A stretch of 14,581 nucleotides of DNA from positions 1-14,581 of the forward strand of contig NW_021825784.1 of assembly GCF_006345805.1 (NCBI RefSeq), written 5' to 3'. The translations under genes were made by a program, and so were the position numbers. The stretch comes from Octopus sinensis (taxonomy: Eukaryota). The notes beneath the pieces were generated by a model. That model did not search any database, was not told the DNA's origin, and saw nothing but the letters and a program-made list of their open reading frames with translations. Below, one piece after another: positions 1,716 to 14,507 of this stretch; positions within the stretch are counted from its first letter, which is position 1; each line of letters begins with the position of its first letter.

Positions 1716-1743
1716 GAATTTAGACAAAGATTTGTCTAAATTC
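1716..1743. other. Perfect 13-bp inverted repeat with 2-nt spacer
   Basis: GAATTTAGACAAA-ga-TTTGTCTAAATTC. Confidence 0.85.
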
Positions 1744-1781
1744 CCGCCTTTTTCTCCACGTTTTTTGTCATTCAAATTAGC

Positions 1782-1794
1782 GTTGCTAGGCAAC
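1782..1794. promoter_or_regulatory. RFX X-box-like motif
   Basis: GTTGCTAGGCAAC matches the palindromic RFX X-box type. It lies in unique sequence about 40 bp from an E2F-like TTCCCGCC (1741-1748). Function is not shown. Confidence 0.45.
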
Positions 1795-2859
1795 AGATAG
1801 AAACAATTGAACGGGAAGCGTCAGAAGTTATAGAGAGACTCCAGACTGGGCGGTTTGTGTGATACCAGACCAGAAATATCACCAGACACCCATAAGCATG
1901 GGTTGTCACAAATGGATTTACCCGTTGTCTTTTCTATGTGTGTGCAAGAATCTACGTATAATAATGTATAATTATAGTATATATATCTGAGTTTATATGT
2001 GAATATGCATGTATATATATATTCTGCTTTCCTGGGGTATAATTATGATGTATATTTATATTCCTATATAAATGTATCGGCAATCCTATACAATAGAGTC
2101 GGAAATTATCCAATACCTCAAATATTCCAACATCTTTTGATATTTCTTTTTTAAACTTGTACATATACATGAATAAATGTATACACAAACACACATACAT
2201 ATAGTATATATATACACACCTACATCTCTACAGTTATATATATATATATCCTTTGGCATAACTACAGATGAACACCCCATCGACTTTGTTTCCTCATAAC
2301 TTCCAGGAAAATGGATATTTTTAATGAAACTTCCACTTTCATTTTCTAAGAGAAAAGGATGCTCTCAAAAGAAATCCTCTTTTACAAAGCTCTATTTAAA
2401 TCCCTGTGGATAAATCCCAGCAAGAATCTTCTCAGGCTCTCCAATATTTTACAATTATATAAAGAGAAAGAATCGGGGGCCAGGAAGTGGGCTAAAAATA
2501 ATCAGAGATTTTTAAAATATTCTTTTTATTTTTTATAACATAAATGTGTTTCTGAGGGAAAAAATGAGAAAAAAAAGAAGACAAGGAGGGTGGTGTGCTA
2601 GAAAACAACAGCCAAATCTCCCTTAAATCACACACTTTTCCCTCGAACCTTACAAAACATTTTGCCAACAAATTCTTTTTAATCGTAATCTACATCGTTT
2701 GAAAGTTATTTCTACCAAATTCATTCAAAAATACCCATTTTTATACAAAATACCTTATACACATATATATTTATATACCTACATATACACACATGTCCTT
2801 GCTATGTTTTTTAAACACATAAAACTCATAGATGCATACTTTTATAATATTTTACACTT

Positions 2860-3220
2860 AAACCGCCGGAGGACAATATTTTCGGAGTTGCTTCTTAAAG
2901 TGTCCTTCACTTTTTTTATGACAAACGATACAAATTTCAGAGTATACTGTTAGGCCATCTATAGGACAATATTTGACATGGATGCTTTGAAAATTGTCCT
3001 TCGATTTTTATTTGTGATGAAACAAAAATGTGAAGGTTTTTGTGGCTCTTTCTAGCATGAAATGAGACCATATACAGGTCAATTTTATTTATAAATGCTT
3101 CTTATCTGTCCTTCAAATTTTATATGAAAAATAAAATGGTTTCTATTTCTAGCATGAAAAATGACCTGCTATGGGAAAGCTTTTACTGAATGCTTCTTAA
3201 AGTGTCCTTCTCTTTTTTTA
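2860..3220. repeat. Degenerate tandem array, about four units of about 100 bp
   Basis: Core TGTCCTTC, each preceded by TGCTT and followed by a T-run, at 2901, 2995, 3107 and 3203. TTTCTAGCATGAAA occurs twice and AGGACAATATTT twice. Confidence 0.65.
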
Positions 3221-3228
3221 TGAACCCC

Positions 3229-3253
3229 CAACAACAACAACAACAACAACAAC
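3229..3253. repeat. (CAA)n microsatellite
   Basis: Direct reading. Confidence 0.95.
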
Positions 3254-3383
3254 CCTACGAGGACGAAAGGCAATGTTTGTGCGTGTGTGCAGTTGGAATG
3301 TCACTGCAACAACAACAACAACAATCTATTCTTATTAAACGTTAAAAACTGTCAGATGCAGACTGCACACACGCACACACAAC

Positions 3384-3454
3384 GATGATGATGATGATGA
3401 CGATGGTGAAGATGACGATATAGTGATGGTGATGATGATGATGGTGATTATGAC

Positions 3455-3504
<50 letters not shown>

Positions 3505-3570
3505 CGATGATGATGATGACGACGACGGCGACGGCGACGATGATGATGACGAGGATGGTGGTGGTGATGG
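3384..3570. repeat. Long (GAT)n/(GAC)n/(GGT)n compound microsatellite
   Basis: Direct reading; it explains the spurious poly-Met and poly-Ser ORFs. Confidence 0.95.
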
Positions 3571-3940
3571 TGGCGGCAGTGGTAGTCTGCCTTTTAATGG
3601 AGAATCAATGATTATGAAAGTCTCTGGTTTCAGACCAGACATTCCTATACATACATGCATGCGTATATATATATATATATACACACACAAACATACATAC
3701 ATATAGCCTTATTTCTACACATACATTCCTAAATATGTGTGTATATATATATAAACACATGTACATATACTGTATATAAATATACACACACACACACACA
3801 GAGTGTTGTGGAATGTTACAACAATAATTGTTAGTGTGTAGAATGCAATGTATGCGATGCAGGTTGGATTCCCGGGCGAAGCCATTTATAACAACAATAA
3901 TAAGAAGAAGAAGATTGAAGTTTAATATTTCTGGCAATAT

Positions 3941-4998
3941 TTATTTGTCAAAATAAAAGAAAGCAAAAGATTGACGTCCAGGAATAATTCCAAAAACCAT
4001 CAAAGAATTGTCGGAAACATCCAAACCAAGAACTTCAAAGACTTCATTATCATCCTCAGTGAGGAGTAAATATTTTGGATTATCTTTTAATCCCAGGATT
4101 TCATCATCTTCAGATGTTTCCTCTTCAATATGTCGAGGTATTTCGTAAATATTGTTATTTGAATCTGTTATATAAACACATTCACCAATTATGGTCAGAC
4201 GAGGTCTTGGAATATAATAATGTTGCAGATCATAAATTATTCTTTCTTCTATTCTTATCCTCCTCACCAAAGACTTTTCCCTGAACCATTCCACAAAACA
4301 AAAAACTTTCCAATATCTACACCACTTCTCCTCCATCTCCCACCCTTCAAACTCCTCCCTCCTCACAACAACAATATCACCAAAAGATGTGACTCCCACA
4401 TCATCCAACACCACTTCATGTCTCTCCATCCTTCCCCCTCTCCTCATCTTCCCACGACACACTTCATCTTTACATTTCCCATCTTCGAAATCAACCACAT
4501 CCACATAATAAGGGTCAAAGATGTAGGGGTCATCCCAACAATAGTAATCCTTGTTCTTATTCCATTTCTTTTGTATTTCTTGTGTCTCTCTTCTTGAGTT
4601 ATGTCTCTAATATAATGACCACACACGAGTTGATTGTCGTTGTATTTATTAATCCTGTTGTAGTATTTCTCAGTTCTGATGGTTTTTAAACGACGGAGAT
4701 CCCTGTCGAAGACCCTCATTTCTCTCCCAAAGGCGACAATGAAACATTCCTCTGTCCACCGACATATGTCCAGTGGTGGTCGTTGTTGTTGTTCATGTTG
4801 AAGTATGTCCACTGTTGTTGTTGTTGTTGTTCTGATTAATGTGACACTTTCTCGAAACATCAACACACTCACATTCTCATATAACTTAATTAGTTTACTG
4901 TTCTGGTCCCTAATGTCCCTACAATTATAATCAACAGGTTCCTCGAATGCAGGAATGGAAAAAGGGACCATTGCTGTCCTATATGGAAGTCTCCTCAC
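3941..4998 (-). CDS. C-terminal propeller module of the same gene (two overlapping ORFs, frameshift near 4550)
   Basis: DICRWTEECFIVAF matches DICRWDSNHIGVTLP of the central ORF. Adding one A in an A-run near 4550 gives YKKKWNKNKDYYCWDDPYIFDPYYVDVVDF and joins 4444-4998 to 3941-4504. Confidence 0.85.
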
Positions 4999-7900
4999 TG
5001 ATATTTCATCAATTCCTGAATTATAATCTCCGCTATGTAATTACCACATCTCACCTTTAATCTACCTTTACCAATTATTTCACCTGATTTACCTCTTCTT
5101 CTTCCTCCTCCATCTCCATCTCCTCCTCTGTATTCCAATTTATTAATTAATTCATTACTGAATATTTCTTGTTCGTTTCAGATGTAATGGAAGGGAAACG
5201 AAGACCAGAATCAAGATTTAATGACGACACAGATTCCAGAATGTTCACTTGGTCCCCATCAATCTTTATGCAATGACATTCAATCAATTCATTATGTACA
5301 CACCAGTAAATACCCGCCACTTTTCTCCATATTACACCATAAGGGATGAGACTCGACCAAACTTGAGATGTCTGCAAATCTTCTCCATTCAGTTGAAATA
5401 TTTCTTTCCTTTTAGGAACCGTGGCCATTATGTGTGATTCTTGTGTAAAACACACACCACCAACTAAACTTGCAACATTTCTGTGACATAGCAACTGGCC
5501 GTCTTCATCGAATATTTTAACATTTCCATTATTGGCTTTTTCACACACAACTGTCTTTCCTTCCTCAGAGACATCAAAATCTTTTACTTGAACAGGACAT
5601 TCGTCTGTTTGTAAACGAGCAACCAGGAAGCTGTCTCGATTCACCATAAACAACCCTTCAACATACAATTCATTCTCTCTTCCCAATATCCCAAGGCTTC
5701 CAACAAACCTTGGTCCTTTACTGTCTATACTGAAGAAATATACTTTATCTTTATAAATTCTTTTATTTAAAAATATTCTCTTGTATTCCCCATTCTGGGT
5801 CAAACACAAAATGTTTCGATATCCAGATGGACCTAAATATTTCTCCCACTCACCATAAATGTACAAAAAACTGTCATCAATTGTCATCCTGTCAACACCA
5901 CTAAAATAATCCTTCATGTAGTGTCTGACTGAATGTAAATATTGACCATCACTGTTGAAGAAAATGATGAATTTCCAGTTGAAGACGATGATGACATCTT
6001 CATCAGTAACTTTAATATCCCGGATTATATCAGAACAATTTCCATCTTCGTCTCTTCTTATTAATGGTTCAGGTATGTCTATTTTATTTATTTCCTTCAC
6101 ACTCGAATGTATTTCATCAATATCAACAAAATGCAAATGTCTTCCATCTCTCACTTCACTCAAAACCAGTTGATTGTTTGATAAAGAAGCCACACATTTA
6201 TATTTATTTCTCGTTTCGTAAATTACCAACGACAATGGAAATTCCACTTTTAATGTCAACAGTTGGGATTTATTATAATCATCCCAATTCGTAATGACCA
6301 GTGTGTTTGACTGCCATCGACACATTTTAATATCATAATAAACATTCACTTTGATTGAATCCATAAGGTGACCATCCAATGTGAATATCTTAATGTTTCC
6401 ATTCCCCCTGTCCCATCCTGCAATCAGATTATTTTCAGTAAGAACCAAATGATTAATCCACGCTGGTTCTTTGTCTCCCAAATGTTTAGGGAGAGGAATA
6501 TGTCTGGCTTTATCAGAAACTGTCAGGTCCTGTAGATATAAAGTGGAAGACAACATTTCACTGAGAGAAATGTGTCTGGAAAATACATCCACCAGGTCGA
6601 TATAATAATTAAGTTGATTATTAGTAACGAGATCATTAACCAACAAATTCTGATCGTTTATGGCAAACATACGGCTTCTGTCTATCAGATAAACAGACGT
6701 TTGGTCAATAGATCCACCTTGGAGACTGAGGGGACGTTTCACTTGGGACATTAAAACACTGGGGACCATCTGACGACTGCCATGACCACCACCACCACCT
6801 ATTCTAGTGTTGTACTGAAAAGCTTTTCCCCTAGTAACAATTAATAGCTTTTCTGTTTTCTTGTCTATTGATAATGATTTCACAAACACAGGGATTTTAA
6901 TTGTCTTAATTACTTCGACTTGATTATAATAATTGATGGCTACAATGTCTAAATGTGATGGTTTATCACAATAAAAAACAATTTCACCTTCACCCATCTT
7001 ACACACCCGTACATAAGGCTGCCTTAACGATACACTTCTCACTCTCTTTGATAGGTTTCCGATGACCCTTAATTGTTTCTGTAGGGGTAATGTGACCCCT
7101 ATATGATTAGAATCCCATCGACATATATCTGTGGCTGTAGACGGCAGAGATAATCTGGACACAATGTCTCCTTCCTCAGAAATGTATAACAAGCAATCAT
7201 GCTTGATGTCAGACACCACCAACTGTCCATTGGACAGATTACATATTTCACCAATGACAAGTTTTTGGTCATTCTCCTTTTCTTTGAGACGTAGATTTAG
7301 ATTTCTAATATAAGGATTTTTCGTAGGTAAACAACAGCCAGACGACCGGTCTTGATACTTGTAAAGAAGAACCCTGTTGAGTTGAGTGTCCGGGACATAA
7401 AGAGTTCCTTGGAAAACAGCAATGTGAGGGTGAACAGGGAAAGGCAGTTCCCACTGCCATTTCATTTGTCCATATAGATCGTAACATCTGAGAATAGAGT
7501 GTCTCCTGAAGAGGACATAGAAATAAACATTATCAGAGTAGATGTGATGAGGGTAGCCATAGAATGGAAGGCATTTTTGAAAAAGTTCTTCACCACATGT
7601 GGAATAAAATACCATTTTATTTTCGTTTCCATCTACGACTACAAAATTAATTGGAGTTGCAGCAATGCTGACATTATGATGTCCCAGAGAATTCTTTCTG
7701 CAATGTCAACTTTATCTTTGTGGATCAATAGGATTGGACCTCGCTTTTTGTTTCAGTGGTGGTCACAGCTAAATACTTATTTGATACAATATGACATATT
7801 TTCATGTAACCAGTTTGCACCTTTATTAAGGCCTTTTCTTAGTTCAGGACAAGTGATATACTGAAATCCTTTCATTTCACAATAAAATACCAGGAATCTG

Positions 7901-9395
7901 TTTGCATTTATTCTACAACAGAAAGAAGGAAGCTCAAGGAAAACTGAATTATTTTGGTTAATTATTCCCCGTTATCAGTGAATAATTTAGCTTTCTTGTT
8001 TTTGTAAATTATTAATATAGAAGATGTAGACATAGGTAGAATATTGTAATGTTGTAGCAATCCTCAATATCAATATAGTCTTTTAAACTGGGGGTATGTA
8101 GCTGGTGGTTGTATGACAGTTTGGGCCAAAAGTCTTTATTCATTTGAATACCATGTGGTTTGCCGCAATAATCTGTTACCAAAATGGTATCTTTACCAAC
8201 AAAAATAGAGCGGCATTTCCTGCCAATGTCCCTCCTTGTTACACCACTTTAGCTGAAATCCTATAAATTATTTGTCCCTGGAGGACATAGAAATAATTTT
8301 GGTAGAGAGAGATTTACTTGGGAGGTGCAGAGAATGGGTCTTACCCCATAACTGTTGGCCATCAGTTTGTAACAGATTACTCTGTTGATGCTGGCGAATG
8401 TAATTACAAGTATATTCTGGACCCCTACAGCAATATCTGAAGGGGTTTCTTTGGTAATAAATTGATAGTTAATGGTGTTATCCTTCCAATCAAATTGGTA
8501 AACTGTCTTACCAAACATTTCTACACCTATAAGTGTAGAATCTTCCAAGTAACTCACCATATGTAACCCCAACTTTATCCTTTTGATCTTGAAGGTTTTG
8601 GGCTGATAATAAGATCATTTCTTGGAAGGGGAGGGTTGCCAGAACCATGTCTTCACTGATTCTGGTGAAACTGGTCAAAAGATGGACAATGGATATCAAT
8701 TCTGTGACTGTCTCTTGTTACTAAACTTATTGTCTTTCAGGTGGGATATGTCATCACTCCCTCCTCTATGATGACACTATTGGATATTATTGTCCTTCTT
8801 CAAATTCTTCTCCAGATTCCTCAATTTCTTCTCTGGTCACAACTGGCTGAAGAGGCCGAAATTTTGTGGTTACTTTTGGTGTTCAATGGTCTTGTGGTTG
8901 TATGGGTTACGGTGACATAAATGTCAAAGAGTCTTTGTTGAACCATTCGAGGTCCTGCTCAATAGAAATATTCTTTTCTTTAGTATATTTCAGCAAAATT
9001 CCAAGTCTCTCTTTGACCTTTTCTAAAATACAATTGGCACTTAATCCCAGACTTTCATAATATTGGCTCTCCTTAACTATATGCTCCATAAACTCATGCT
9101 GCAATCATATTGAAGACAAATCCTCGTATTTTAGCAACTATTTGGTTTTCAGTTCTTTTGTGCTTTCTTTGTCTCCATGTGTGTTGAGTCTTGCCACAGA
9201 TATGGCCTTCACTGCTGATTCTCTCTCTGAACTAACACTACAATATCCTTCATCACATCTCCTTGAACCATCATCTTCCTCGTATTTACCCCTTTTATTG
9301 TCTACTCCTTCTTCATCCCCTTTTGGTGTTGAGTAACTCAAAGCCTTTTTCTGAGGGATATGTTTCCTTAAACTATTTTCAGTTTGGTCTTCCAT
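3941..9395 (-). CDS. Large (about 1,800 aa) multi-NHL-like beta-propeller protein, apparently single-exon and frameshifted in this sequence
   Basis: ORFs 9138-9395, 8907-9104, 8508-8699, 8261-8572, 5147-7615, 4444-4998 and 3941-4504 join into one protein once 1-2 bases are restored at each break. NHL-like blades recur (GEICNLSNGQLVVSD, NHLVLTENNLIAGWDRGNGNIKIFTLDG, KDFDVSEEGKTVVCEKANNGNVKIFDEDG, DDVGVTSFGDIVVV). ATG 9395 lies 7 nt downstream of a good splice acceptor; stop TAA at 3941-3943. A recent pseudogene cannot be excluded. Confidence 0.8.
5147..7615 (-). CDS. Uninterrupted 822-aa central part of the propeller gene (about three NHL-like modules)
   Basis: A 2.5-kb open frame in AT-rich DNA with repeated blade motifs. 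The frame stays open upstream of the ATG (..GHHNVSIAATPINFVVVDGNENKMVFY), so 7615 is unlikely to be the true start. Confidence 0.92.
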   Translation of the reverse strand: MVFYSTCGEELFQKCLPFYGYPHHIYSDNVYFYVLFRRHSILRCYDLYGQMKWQWELPFPVHPHIAVFQGTLYVPDTQLNRVLLYKYQDRSSGCCLPTKNPYIRNLNLRLKEKENDQKLVIGEICNLSNGQLVVSDIKHDCLLYISEEGDIVSRLSLPSTATDICRWDSNHIGVTLPLQKQLRVIGNLSKRVRSVSLRQPYVRVCKMGEGEIVFYCDKPSHLDIVAINYYNQVEVIKTIKIPVFVKSLSIDKKTEKLLIVTRGKAFQYNTRIGGGGGHGSRQMVPSVLMSQVKRPLSLQGGSIDQTSVYLIDRSRMFAINDQNLLVNDLVTNNQLNYYIDLVDVFSRHISLSEMLSSTLYLQDLTVSDKARHIPLPKHLGDKEPAWINHLVLTENNLIAGWDRGNGNIKIFTLDGHLMDSIKVNVYYDIKMCRWQSNTLVITNWDDYNKSQLLTLKVEFPLSLVIYETRNKYKCVASLSNNQLVLSEVRDGRHLHFVDIDEIHSSVKEINKIDIPEPLIRRDEDGNCSDIIRDIKVTDEDVIIVFNWKFIIFFNSDGQYLHSVRHYMKDYFSGVDRMTIDDSFLYIYGEWEKYLGPSGYRNILCLTQNGEYKRIFLNKRIYKDKVYFFSIDSKGPRFVGSLGILGRENELYVEGLFMVNRDSFLVARLQTDECPVQVKDFDVSEEGKTVVCEKANNGNVKIFDEDGQLLCHRNVASLVGGVCFTQESHIMATVPKRKEIFQLNGEDLQTSQVWSSLIPYGVIWRKVAGIYWCVHNELIECHCIKIDGDQVNILESVSSLNLDSGLRFPSITSETNKKYSVMN

Positions 9396-9402
9396 AGTGA
9401 AT

Positions 9403-9420
9403 CTGTAAAGAAATATAAGG
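9403..9420 (-). other. Splice acceptor in front of the giant exon
   Basis: Minus strand ccttatatttctttacAG|ATTCACTATGGAAGAC: polypyrimidine tract plus CAG at the point where coding-like sequence ends. Confidence 0.65.
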
Positions 9421-10003
9421 AAAACATTTAGCTTTGTGAAAATATTAAAGTTTCAGGGAGATGATGTTTGCTTCATCATTTGAAAAACACAAACAAAACA
9501 TTTATGTATTTCTGTCAGTGAATTAATCTTGTCTAATTAATATTTAAACAACTTATTACAATCTATTCTAAGATGTCTTAATAAGTTTCATTAATTACAT
9601 GGAGTCTAGATATTAGAAATAATTATTTTCACTGGAAATGATATTTGCTCTCAACATCACAAAGAAATAGTCATGTGTGGCTTAGATTTATTTAACGATA
9701 ATTAGTCAAAGAGATTCCCCTGCTCCAAAAGCACTCAATAACGAGACACTCTAAGCTGTAGAGAAAATTAACTTTAATTGGTGTACATGCTATATTATGT
9801 CCCAACACACAGCAATCATGTTCAAACTTCGTTAACATGGAACAATTAGCAAAACATAGACTTTATTATGTTTCATAGACATTTGTCAGATATAAAACAG
9901 ACTGAACATTTTGCTAGTTAGATGGAATATAAGTATTACTAATGATTATATGTAATTAAAATGATGGGACAGTCATGGTTGGCTTGGTTTCCATCATATT
10001 TAC

Positions 10004-10261
10004 CTGGATTAACAAATACGAATAAAGCTGGAGATGAAACTGTTCTTAACCTGACAACTGCTGTAAATCTCTCGACATTTCAATATAATCCGCACAATTA
10101 TCATACACAACATTGATTAACTCGGAAAGCTTATCCAAAGATGGGCTTTCATATAACCACACTGATAGACAGCTTGTTGAGAGGATCGTTATTATTTGTT
10201 GCTGATTGAGATAATAAAGATTGGTTAATGAATAAGCCCAATTAATGAAAGGTAGGTTCAT
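10004..10261 (-). other. Possible upstream exon (coding or UTR)
   Basis: Protein-like 71-aa ORF (..LYESPSLDKLSELINVVYDNCADYIE..) followed by a donor-like CAG|GTAAAT (GT at 10003-10002). No family recognised. Confidence 0.25.
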
Positions 10262-10641
10262 CTTAATTATCTTTAAATAAGGACAATGTTTGGTAGCAAT
10301 GAGAAGATGTGTTTGTATGAAAAAGGGGTTTGGCAGGTGAAGTGTGTTTTGTTTTGTGTTAGGTGAGGAGTTATAACTTGGTGTAGTTTATTATGAAGTA
10401 TTGGGGTTTAATGAGGTGGATTAGGAAATATTGGTGGGGGTGTTTAATGACATTCTGGTGACCCATCATCATCAGAATGATCCTCCACCGCCTCCTTGGT
10501 CTATGAAATAATGACTGTTACTCTATTGACCCCAGGAGGAATGAAAAATAAAGAGACCTTCTTCAGGATACACATACATATATATGATACTAGCAGTATC
10601 GCCCGGCGTTGCCGGGTTTGTAAGGGAAATAACTATATAAG

Positions 10642-11038
10642 CATTTTTAGTGAGTATAGCAAAAAATAGCAAAAAATGCATTAGAATGGAATAAAAAATG
10701 ATGGTAATTTTTTTTTTAAATCGTTGACTCATCATAGACATTTTTAGATAGTTACTCCCTTTATAATAGCGAAAAATGCATTAAAATGAATAAAAAATGA
10801 TGGTAATTTTTTTTTTTTTATCGTTGACTCATCGTAAACATTTTTAGAAGTTACTTCTCTTATAAATAGCGAAAATGCATTAAAATCGAATAAAAATGAT
10901 GGTAATTTTTTTTTTAATCGTTGACTCATCGTAGACATTTGTAGAGAGTTACTTCTCTTATATAATAGCGAAAAATGCATTAAAATGGAATAAAAGATGG
11001 TGGTAAATTTTTTTTTAAATCGTAGACTCATCGTAGAC
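10642..11038 (+). repeat. Four tandem copies of an about 100-bp unit
   Basis: TCGT(T/A)GACTCATC at 10721, 10821, 10918 and 11020, each preceded by ATGCATTA..ATG...GATGGT..AATTTTTTT. Confidence 0.95.
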
Positions 11039-11066
11039 GGCGCTAATATCCCAGAAGGGCTCGATA

Positions 11067-11474
11067 TGAATCACGACTATAAGATACACTGCACCACAAA
11101 ATGTGGGAGTAGTTAGGATCTAAATCGTAGGAGACAGACACACAACCTTACTTTTATAATAAAGATTTGTGCAACAACGAAAACATTCGGTTGTGCAAAT
11201 TGTTTGAATCACGACTATAGATACCGGTTTTGCTTAAACTGCACCGCAAATGTGGGAGTAGTTAGGAATCTAAATCGAAGGAGACAGACCCACAACCTTA
11301 CTTTTATATATAATATTTGTGCAACAACGAAAACATTCGGTTGTGCAAATTGTTTGAATCACGACTATAAGATACCCGGTTTTGGTTAAACTGCACCGCA
11401 AAATGTGGGAGTAGTTAGGAATCTAAATCGTAAGGAGACAGACAGCTCACAACAACTACATTTTATATATATAG
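11067..11474 (+). repeat. Three tandem copies of a 138-150-bp unit
   Basis: TGAATCACGACTATA at 11067, 11205 and 11355, each followed by ACTGCACC..AAATGTGGGAGTAGTTAGG..CTAAATCG..GGAGACAGAC. Confidence 0.95.
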
Positions 11475-12327: not shown

Positions 12328-12355
<28 letters not shown>

Positions 12356-12358
<3 letters not shown>

Positions 12359-12656
12359 CAAAATCAAAATCCAAGTCGATCAACATCAATGGAAATTGTA
12401 GCTGTGATACCAGTGCCGGTGGCACATAAAAAGACCATCTGATCGTGGCCGTTTGGCAGCCTCGTCTGGCACCTGTGTCGGTGGCACGTAAAAAGCACCC
12501 ACTACACTCACGGAGTGGTTGGCATTAGGAAGGGCATCCAGCCATAGAAACTTTGCCAGATCAGACTGGGCCTGGTGCAGCCTTCTGGCTTCCCAGACCC
12601 CAGTTGAAACGTCCAACCCATGCTAGCATGGAAAGCGGACGCTAAGTGATGATGAT
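12356..12656 (+). mobile_element. Short retroposon (SINE or 5'-truncated LINE) with RTE-like 3' tail
   Basis: Duplicated CGGTGGCAC(A/G)TAAAAAG motif, GGAGTGGTTGGCATTAGGAAGGGCATCCAGC, and end CCAACCCATGCTAGCATGGAAAGCGGACG followed by (GAT)n. Recognised as a common octopus repeat; RTE affinity is from memory. Confidence 0.75.
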
Positions 12657-13878: not shown

Positions 13879-14094
13879 TTTCTACTATAGGCATAAGGCC
13901 TGAAATTTTGGGTGTGGGGGGTTAATTGATTATGTCACCCCCCCCCTCCCCTAACTGGTTCTTATTTTATCAATCCCAAAAGGACGAGGGGCAAAATCAA
14001 CCTTGGTGGAATTTGAACTCAAAATGTAAACTTGGAAGAAATGATGCAAAGTATTTTGTCTGGCATTTTGTAACAATTCTGCTTGTTCATCACA
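13879..14094 (-). mobile_element. tRNA-derived SINE, second family
   Basis: Minus strand has B-box-like GAGTTCAAATTCCACC; tail ATAGGCATAAGGCCTGAAATTTTGG; aligns with 14241-14449. Confidence 0.75.
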
Positions 14095-14240: not shown

Positions 14241-14449
14241 ATTTCAAGTTTTGGCACAAGGCCAGCAAGTTCAAGGAAGGGGCCAGTCTATTACACTGAC
14301 CCCAGTACTCAACTAGTACTTAATTTATGGATCCGAAAAGGGTGAGAGGCTAAGTCAACCTTGGTGGAATTTGAACTCAGAATGTAAAGATGGACAAAAT
14401 GCCGCTCAACATTTTGCTTTGCATCCTCACAATTCTGCCAGCTCGTCAC
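14241..14449 (-). mobile_element. tRNA-derived SINE, second family (related copy)
   Basis: Shares TCAACCTTGGTGGAATTTGAACTCA and GGCACAAGGCC with 13879-14094; minus-strand head GACGAGCTGGCAGAATTG. Confidence 0.8.
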
Positions 14450-14451
14450 AG

Positions 14452-14507
14452 TAATTATAATAATAATAGTAATAATAATAATAATAATAATAATATAATA
14501 ATAATAA

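Follow-up and report, generated by a model that had tools for sequence, protein, structure and literature searches.

The window analysed in this study, a 14,581-nucleotide stretch of Octopus sinensis DNA (contig NW_021825784.1 of RefSeq assembly GCF_006345805.1), contains on its minus strand, from position 9395 to position 3941, a frame-broken coding region. We find it quite probable that this region represents one copy from an octopod-only family of intronless, tandemly amplified genes whose products are soluble chains of six NHL-type β-propellers that act as multivalent scaffolds. The region was delimited by frameshift-aware protein-to-DNA alignment, tblastn searches with paralogues, and DNA alignments with three related loci, L001 and L003 of Octopus vulgaris and L002 of O. 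sinensis. It opens with an ATG at 9395-9393, closes with a stop codon at 3943-3941, exactly where a first-pass annotation made from the sequence alone had placed its start and end, and comprises approximately 1,824 codons once the frame is repaired. For the repair we used a 1,851-amino-acid (aa) reference composed from two paralogues, the open reading frame (ORF) of L003 and the C-terminus of protein P0002. The window is colinear with this reference from 9389 to 3944 and shares 90.9% amino acid identity with it across 1,792 codons. The sole long uninterrupted stretch, 852 codons at 7705..5150 (minus strand), lies among shorter open stretches in all three minus-strand frames. In a word-indexed search it matched 43 homologues (best E = 0, 92-93% identical), all from Octopus vulgaris, O. 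sinensis, or O. bimaculoides and ranging from 500 to 1,478 aa. When several of these homologues were compared with the window by tblastn, the matches ran colinearly from 9395 to 3944 while switching frame repeatedly. Judged from these alignments, the colinearity of 9395..3941 with the family is far above chance. The hidden protein proposed by the first-pass annotation is thus real as a family, present in databases as unnamed gene models, but the intact copy as it was written does not stand.

After the N-terminal region, the repaired protein is built of six consecutive units of approximately 230 to 330 aa, each marked by a recurring motif. Unit 1 (8822..8078, minus strand, as are all units) has its motif FTRISEDMVLATLP at 8669-8628 and is heavily frameshifted. 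Unit 2 (8077..7286) carries FCCRINANRFLVFY at 7923-7882; its 5' part is frameshifted and its last three blades fall inside the open 852-codon stretch, which then runs on through unit 3, unit 4, and the greater part of unit 5. The frame is intact in unit 3 (7285..6485, motif DICRWDSNHIGVTLP at 7129-7085) and in unit 4 (6484..5615, motif KMCRWQSNTLVITNW at 6328-6284), the latter being both the NHL-like propeller with the best model and the unit that is hypervariable across the family. Unit 5 (5614..4927) has its motif GVCFTQESHIMATVP at 5458-5414 and one-base deletions at approximately 5169 and 5023, and its first blade (VVCEKANNGNVKIFDEDGQLL) is the most NHL/WD40-like stretch of the protein. 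Unit 6 (4926..3944), with DICRWTEECFIVAF at 4770-4729 and a one-base deletion at approximately 4565, is longer (328 aa), contains a charged insert, and terminates in ...GRQSFAFFYFDK. All six motifs named by the first-pass annotation were therefore located, with spacings from motif to motif of 251, 266, 267, 290, and 230 aa. A segment at 6517-6797 (ORF residues 304-397, SIDQTSVYLIDRSRMFAINDQNLLVNDL...YLQDLTVSDKAR) is among the most conserved of the family, with many invariant or nearly invariant columns in alignment A1, and nonetheless receives very low AlphaFold confidence (predicted local distance difference test, pLDDT, of 20-35).

A blastp comparison of the repaired protein with itself returned only the diagonal, and unit-versus-unit blastp gave weak in-register matches, the best at 1.8e-4. 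We then built a profile of each unit from the paralogues and compared the profiles with one another using hhalign. In-register matches were obtained between units 3 and 6 (95.6% probability, E 1.3e-8), units 4 and 5 (E 1e-5), units 2 and 4 (E 2.5e-4), and units 3 and 4 (E 5.8e-4), the remaining pairs being weaker. A pooled alignment of all units displayed a common pattern across at least the first ~130 residues. A hidden Markov model (HMM) of the first blade found six sites, 250-290 aa apart, in P0045, P0046, and P0071, which are outside the HMM training set, and three to four sites in an Argonauta protein and in P0049. The in-register profiles and the behaviour of the blade HMM on independent members bear out the six tandem units proposed earlier, and indicate that the motif recurs through real homology, as the ground plan of the family.

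The predicted structure of these units is a β-propeller. AlphaFold2 modelling of the 852-aa stretch with a 44-sequence alignment gave a mean pLDDT of 56, with residues 401-620 at 80-89, and a model made almost entirely of strands of 5-7 residues grouped in fours. Foldseek matched this model to tandem-propeller proteins, namely IFT-A subunits, UTP and WDR proteins, LRP4, LRP2, LRP6, COPI, and DDB1, with E-values from 1e-16 to 1e-11 and template modelling (TM) scores of only 0.2-0.3, as expected for a multi-domain query. Unit 4 was also modelled alone, using an alignment that pools units 1-6 from diverse paralogues. This model reached a predicted TM score (pTM) of 0.73 and showed five four-stranded blades over residues 20-220 at pLDDT 85-94. 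Its best Foldseek match was the NHL domain protein Mei-P26 (1.8e-7, target TM 0.60), followed by Thin, TRIM2, Brat, TRIM71, NHL-2, and TRIM3; the NHL matches extend over approximately 255-265 aligned columns with target TM scores of 0.5-0.6, and other six-bladed proteins, enzymes such as virginiamycin B lyase, were matched as well. Profile searches of the PDB pointed to the same class. With the pooled-unit profile (A4), TRIM2 was matched at 2.1e-9, TRIM3 at 3e-8, TRIM71 at 4e-7, and Brat at 3e-6, and more weakly Thin (4e-4) and Mei-P26 (7e-4); the top 16 PDB matches were TRIM-NHL-type domains plus three designed WRAP-T propellers. The first-blade segment of this profile aligns in turn to each of the six blades of TRIM2. 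A family-wide profile gave matches only at E 0.1-1, all eight of which were NHL domains of TRIM2, TRIM3, or TRIM71. The all-β meanders of four-stranded blades and the profile and Foldseek results agree with the fold and the NHL-like class that the first-pass annotation had assigned, and on the basis of these sequence profiles and models we accept that the units are NHL-like in the sense of homology at the level of blade and fold.

Several observations weigh against this assignment. Pfam was run on nine window fragments and ten family members and returned nothing above threshold: the NHL family (PF01436) stayed below its cut-off in every member tested, the closest being P0049, whose 18.5 bits (E 0.002) compare with a required 20; P0010, P0012, P0015, P0020, P0045, P0046, P0047, and P0071 gave no NHL match, and the window fragments gave no Pfam match of any kind. 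The NHL sequence link depends on a single blade in each unit that is well preserved. In unit 4, the sixth blade (residues 248-314, the last ~65) has a pLDDT below 50, the 852-aa model is poor in unit 5 and at the end of unit 3, and the alignments behind the models are shallow, with 34-44 sequences from a single family. Because the sixth blade and unit 5 are poorly modelled, the number of six blades per unit is taken from the unit length and from the six-bladed alignment targets. The units might belong to another propeller class, WD40 or YWTD/LDL-receptor class B, and resemble NHL domains only generically. This would agree with the shortfall of Pfam NHL, with the closeness of the 852-aa model to tandem WD40/YWTD proteins (IFT-A, UTPs, LRP4, LRP2, LRP6), with a faint Pfam match to the IFT122 propeller on P0012, and with the fact that the sole non-octopod HMMER matches scanned are bacterial or metagenomic WD40-repeat proteins. 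However, multi-propeller Foldseek matches at TM 0.2-0.3 are expected for any tandem-propeller query, and a single unit leads to NHL domains first, both by sequence and by fold. In the pooled-unit PDB search a WD40 protein (WDR5) appeared only at E>0.5, and none of the 26 PDB sequences matched at E<=10 was a YWTD protein. Pfam finds neither Ldl_recept_b nor EGF domains, and units of ~230-330 aa suit six blades rather than seven. No Pfam WD40 match above threshold was obtained in the members tested, the WD40_CFAP43 match on P0045 having an E-value of only 0.063. We therefore regard another propeller class as improbable and retain the NHL-type designation.

Upstream of the propellers, the N-terminal region (9395..8823, minus strand) consists of a variable, charged type B head (MEDQTEN...) and a conserved module of approximately 130 aa with the pattern ...ESLGL...WFQQRLFDIYVT.NPY..KTIEPPKVTTKFRP.... 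A zinc-finger pattern was not found in this region, and searches for relatives of the module gave nothing better than E 0.04 in the PDB and E 0.016 in Pfam. No RING or B-box was detected by Pfam in the window fragments, the full-length members, or the N-terminal module, in line with the earlier claim that the protein has neither. One gene model with a RING, P0040 (L008 3001-56548), was considered as a RING-bearing member and rejected as probably chimeric, its ankyrin repeat and sub-threshold C3HC4 RING exons lying 44 kb upstream of an ordinary family copy. The protein has no signal peptide or hydrophobic segment (maximum of the Kyte-Doolittle 19-residue mean below 1.9). Two unrelated gene 5' ends exist among the paralogues (window 8980-9924 versus L001 5780-6881): a head of the form MED(Q/K/P/N)... 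is present in the window, L003, P0015, and P0020, and a head of the form MEK(I/M)NEE... in L001, L002, P0006, P0010, and P0012. The head region looks module-swapped because the sequences on both sides of it are shared, at 97% identity upstream and 90% downstream. The Argonauta hians proteins P0047 and P0068 start with five to nine tandem ADNTRMV heptapeptides, which are absent from the Octopus members examined.

To delimit the family, we searched 1.84 billion representative proteins with HMMER using a 1,002-position family profile. This exhaustive search returned 29 clusters at E<=0.001. Ten new clusters were looked up, of which seven are family members, all from Octopus or Argonauta hians; Pfam identifies the three weakest large clusters (E 5e-5 to 5e-4) as WD40-repeat proteins, one of them cyanobacterial, and their similarity to the profile is weak and short. 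The gene family was thus detected only in Octopus vulgaris, O. sinensis, O. bimaculoides, and Argonauta hians, as far as protein similarity can tell, and its absence from squids, cuttlefish, and Nautilus, which rests on deposited proteins only, is a point on which the octopod restriction could still give way. All named members are annotated as "hypothetical" or "uncharacterized", and literature searches by locus identifier and by topic did not find a description of an octopod six-propeller family. The lineage restriction and lack of characterisation suspected in the first pass are consistent with these results. Intact members range from 1,625 to 1,925 aa (P0044, 1,625; P0049, 1,662; P0045, 1,712; P0071, 1,718; and two Argonauta proteins of 1,913 and 1,925), and P0046, P0066, and P0067 (1,674-1,680 aa) are orthologues kept in three Octopus species that fall into a single 90%-identity cluster. 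Each intact member combines the variable charged head and the conserved N-terminal module with six units that, although homologous, have diverged strongly from one another.

The coding region of the family is intronless, since the annotated coding sequences of P0001, P0002, and P0003 are single genomic intervals; uninterrupted paralogue ORFs of 1,494 and 1,524 aa likewise agree with the single exon described earlier. The open frames at the individual loci are 470 and 1,336 aa in L001, 1,524 followed by 118 and 145 aa in L002, and 1,494 followed by 333 aa in L003. Among L001, L002, L003, L005, L006, L007, and L008, all taken from the O. vulgaris and O. sinensis assemblies, nearly all have one or two frame breaks, at differing sites. 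Because the paralogue loci carry such breaks, gene models are split or truncated (500-1,478 aa, compared with a full length of ~1,800 aa). Many copies lie on one O. vulgaris chromosome record of 29.19 Mb (OX597841.1), where the amplified subfamily to which the window belongs spans at least 7.0-22.8 Mb; some copies are direct neighbours, and some of these are arranged head-to-tail approximately 7-10 kb apart. The amplification fits tandem segmental duplication because of this chromosomal clustering, the homology that reaches into both flanks, and the lack of any transposon protein. A mobile or selfish element that contains the ORF and transposes its copies would also produce many copies of 80-97% identity, several of them frame-broken, with shared flanks that reach past the ORF, and interspersed and tandem repeats abound in the window. 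We judge this highly improbable: no transposase, reverse transcriptase, or integrase domain is present in the window or the flanking ORFs, the copies are concentrated on a single 29-Mb chromosome with some head-to-tail neighbours, the dispersed members are orthologous across three species, and units 2 and 3 are under purifying selection (see below).

Aligned to the 1,851-aa reference, the window copy contains 20 frameshifts, 19 of them deletions of 1-2 nucleotides, at approximately 9154, 9125, 9093, 8938, 8909, 8877, 8794, 8679, 8606, 8364, 8311, 8246, 8046, 7963, 7830, 7735, 7691, 5169, 5023, and 4565. A single in-frame stop, a TGC>TGA substitution at 8737, is the only one among 1,822 repaired codons. 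The coding region is therefore divided into approximately 22 pieces, and the seven ORF fragments counted in the first pass were too few. The breaks are unevenly distributed: 17 frameshifts (1-2 nucleotides, all but one modelled as deletions) and the stop are clustered at 9154..7691 (minus strand), none lies between 7690 and 5170, and the remaining three are at 5169, 5023, and 4565. We compared the window with L003, its closest paralogue. The 5' 1.6 kb differ by ~3% substitutions (approximately 50) yet by 19 small deletions, whereas the central 2.5 kb, with approximately 80 substitutions and thus an equal substitution level, have no frameshift. Over approximately 8 kb, 33 deletions of 1-2 nucleotides were counted against 5 insertions, almost all of one base. 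The one-base deletions are patchy, occurring at 1700-2900 in the non-coding flank and at 7691-9154 in the coding region, and this patchiness suggests uneven polishing of the source assembly.

Two explanations of the frame breaks have to be weighed. In one, they are mostly consensus errors, biased towards deletions, that affect a long-read assembly in patches, and we lean towards this explanation because the indels are far too many for a divergence of ~3%. In the other, the breaks are real and the window copy is a genuine, recently inactivated pseudogene that makes no protein, to which we give somewhat less than an even chance. In favour of inactivation, the copy carries frame-disrupting mutations, by which pseudogenes are recognised, where its paralogues have frames that stay open over 1,494-1,524 aa. 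Its 20 frameshifts and TGC>TGA nonsense substitution make it stand out from the other six cluster loci examined, which have one or two breaks each, so that its break density is approximately 10 times higher; both the nonsense change and this density fit a pseudogene and speak against an intact gene. An exact look-up found no database record identical to the 822-aa ORF of the window copy, and dead copies are usual in large tandem families. However, natural decay with so many indels should have left several-fold more substitutions and several stops. With 19 indels to ~50 substitutions, the 5' 1.6 kb have a proportion of indels several times higher than neutral decay would be expected to give, only one stop is present in 1,822 repaired codons, and the central 2.5 kb are free of frameshifts at an equal substitution level. 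The excess of small deletions over insertions (33 to 5, almost all single-base) also extends to patches of the non-coding flank. Finally, the broken 5' part still has a ratio of non-synonymous to synonymous changes per site (pN/pS) of 0.54 relative to L003 (16 synonymous and 34 non-synonymous single-hit changes), a deficit of amino acid changes compared with neutrality. If the breaks are consensus errors, the animal itself may carry an intact gene at this locus, and the source assembly probably contains uncorrected single-base deletions around it.

To characterise selection, we compared codons among seven cluster paralogues (the window, L001, and L003-L007), counting only codons with a single hit that lay clear of gaps. 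Changes at the end of unit 2 numbered 11 synonymous and 10 non-synonymous (pN/pS 0.25) and those in unit 3 numbered 32 and 40 (pN/pS 0.35), whereas unit 4 had 21 and 89, giving a pN/pS of 1.04. Codons with multiple hits were concentrated in this unit (40, versus 1-4 in each other unit), and its pN/pS rose to 2.35 when they were included. The difference between unit 4 and the rest was significant (Fisher p = 3e-4). In pairwise comparisons, pN/pS reached 2.99 in unit 4 between the window and L003 and 1.93 overall between L001 and L003, and it was 0.5-0.6 for the whole region against the distant paralogue L002. Per-site variability among 20 close paralogues was 0.09-0.19 in unit 4 versus 0.015-0.05 elsewhere (3-6 times), and within unit 4 predicted loops (0.165) were more variable than strands (0.091). 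A pN/pS of 3.2 that unit 5 seemed to show was discarded as an artefact of the out-of-frame tail of L007; it disappeared after trimming. By these counts, units 2 and 3 are under purifying selection among the cluster paralogues. The pattern shows that the cluster genes are constrained now or were so recently, not all of them being dead, and that one propeller, unit 4, is free or driven to change. Two considerations count against reading unit 4 as driven to change: a pN/pS of approximately 1 or above could mean relaxed constraint and not positive selection, and gene conversion among the paralogues could distort the codon counts.

In NHL domains, one propeller face serves to bind RNA or protein. 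By analogy, the family protein would string six binding-competent propellers together in one soluble intracellular chain and work as a multivalent scaffold, each ligand, RNA or protein, binding to one propeller face. The conserved units, propellers 2 and 3, would provide the architecture or constant contacts with constant partners, and propeller 4, which varies mostly in its loops, would be a copy-specific recognition surface that determines specificity; the cluster as a whole would then be a diversifying recognition family. That this private octopod family is such a diversifying recognition system, with propellers 1-3 and 5-6 as the constant scaffold and propeller 4 setting target specificity, is an unlikely extension of our interpretation. 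Its members might, for example, sense or restrict viral or transposon RNA, or serve in self/non-self or gamete recognition. Only the evolutionary pattern prompts the guess of a role in immunity, transposon defence, or reproduction.

The flanks of the coding region are shared with related loci. On the 3' side, a stretch at 1741..3940 (minus strand) that belongs to the duplicated segment is common to the paralogous loci, with 86-94% identity to L003, and an upstream segment at 9924..10569 (minus strand) is common to L001 with 97% identity. The DNA of the window is AT-rich (GC ~0.36) and has many microsatellites. A (GAT)62 microsatellite lies at 3384-3569, approximately 370 bp downstream of the stop codon, and low-complexity tracts of a like kind are similarly placed downstream of L001 and L003. 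Tandem arrays are found at 10665-11038 (3.8 copies of a 100-bp unit) and 11088-11444 (2.4 copies of a 150-bp unit), and the units of the arrays in 10665-11444 recur in several copies at 80-92% identity in the flanks of L002 in O. sinensis. Short interspersed repeats at 469-997, 12355-12656, 13952-14080, and 14277-14457 match multiple sites in L001-L003 with 71-92% identity, and those at 13952-14080 and 14277-14457 match arrays in L002 whose copies are approximately 180 bp apart. No protein domains were found in the ORFs of the interspersed-repeat regions, no Pfam domains in the flanking ORFs, and no Rfam match in the window.

With dozens of copies on a single small octopus chromosome and one fast-evolving propeller, the family is a concrete candidate for a lineage-specific recognition or regulatory system among the many unnamed genes specific to octopuses. 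For structural biology it would offer a natural multi-propeller scaffold, and more than 40 database entries now without any domain annotation gain one. The nearest known relative of a single unit is the NHL domain of the TRIM-NHL proteins (TRIM2, TRIM3, TRIM71/LIN-41, Brat, Mei-P26, Thin, and NHL-2). Like the octopod family these proteins are intracellular, and the likeness resides in the blade signature, a hydrophobic strand followed by D..N..I.vF..dG.l. However, TRIM-NHL proteins have one propeller behind a RING, a B-box, and a coiled coil, whereas the octopod proteins have six propellers and neither RING nor B-box, with a recognisable NHL signature in approximately one blade per unit and Pfam NHL scores below threshold. 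The octopod family is thus outside the TRIM-NHL family. To our knowledge, the NHL propeller has been described only as a single copy per protein, and a chain of six NHL propellers without an E3-ligase module is an undescribed architecture of a known fold.

Other systems resemble the family in single aspects. The YWTD arrays of the LDL-receptor family (LRP4, LRP5/6, LRP1, and LRP2) likewise have several six-bladed propellers per polypeptide and count among the closest structural matches of the 852-aa model, but they are extracellular and have EGF spacers, signal peptides, membrane anchors, and YWTD motifs, all of which the octopod proteins lack. Tandem WD40 proteins (IFT122/IFT140, the UTP/WDR proteins of the SSU processome, COPI, and DDB1) are intracellular scaffolds with two or three consecutive propellers and provide the top Foldseek matches of the same model, and the blades are weakly similar to those of bacterial WD40 arrays. 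Those WD40 propellers are seven-bladed and are encoded by ancient, conserved, single-copy genes, in contrast to the octopod proteins, which have approximately six-bladed NHL-like units, six per chain, and are lineage-restricted and amplified. The evolutionary pattern also resembles that of rapidly evolving, tandemly expanded recognition families such as the B30.2 proteins TRIM5 and fish finTRIM, with young tandem paralogues, a conserved scaffold, and one domain whose excess of amino acid changes is concentrated in loops. In the octopod family the variable domain is a propeller and not a B30.2/SPRY domain, an E3 ligase module is absent, and a role in immunity would be conjectural. Should the recognition model be true, the family would represent a new solution to a problem that is met elsewhere by the B30.2 domains of TRIM5 and finTRIM or by LRR receptors.

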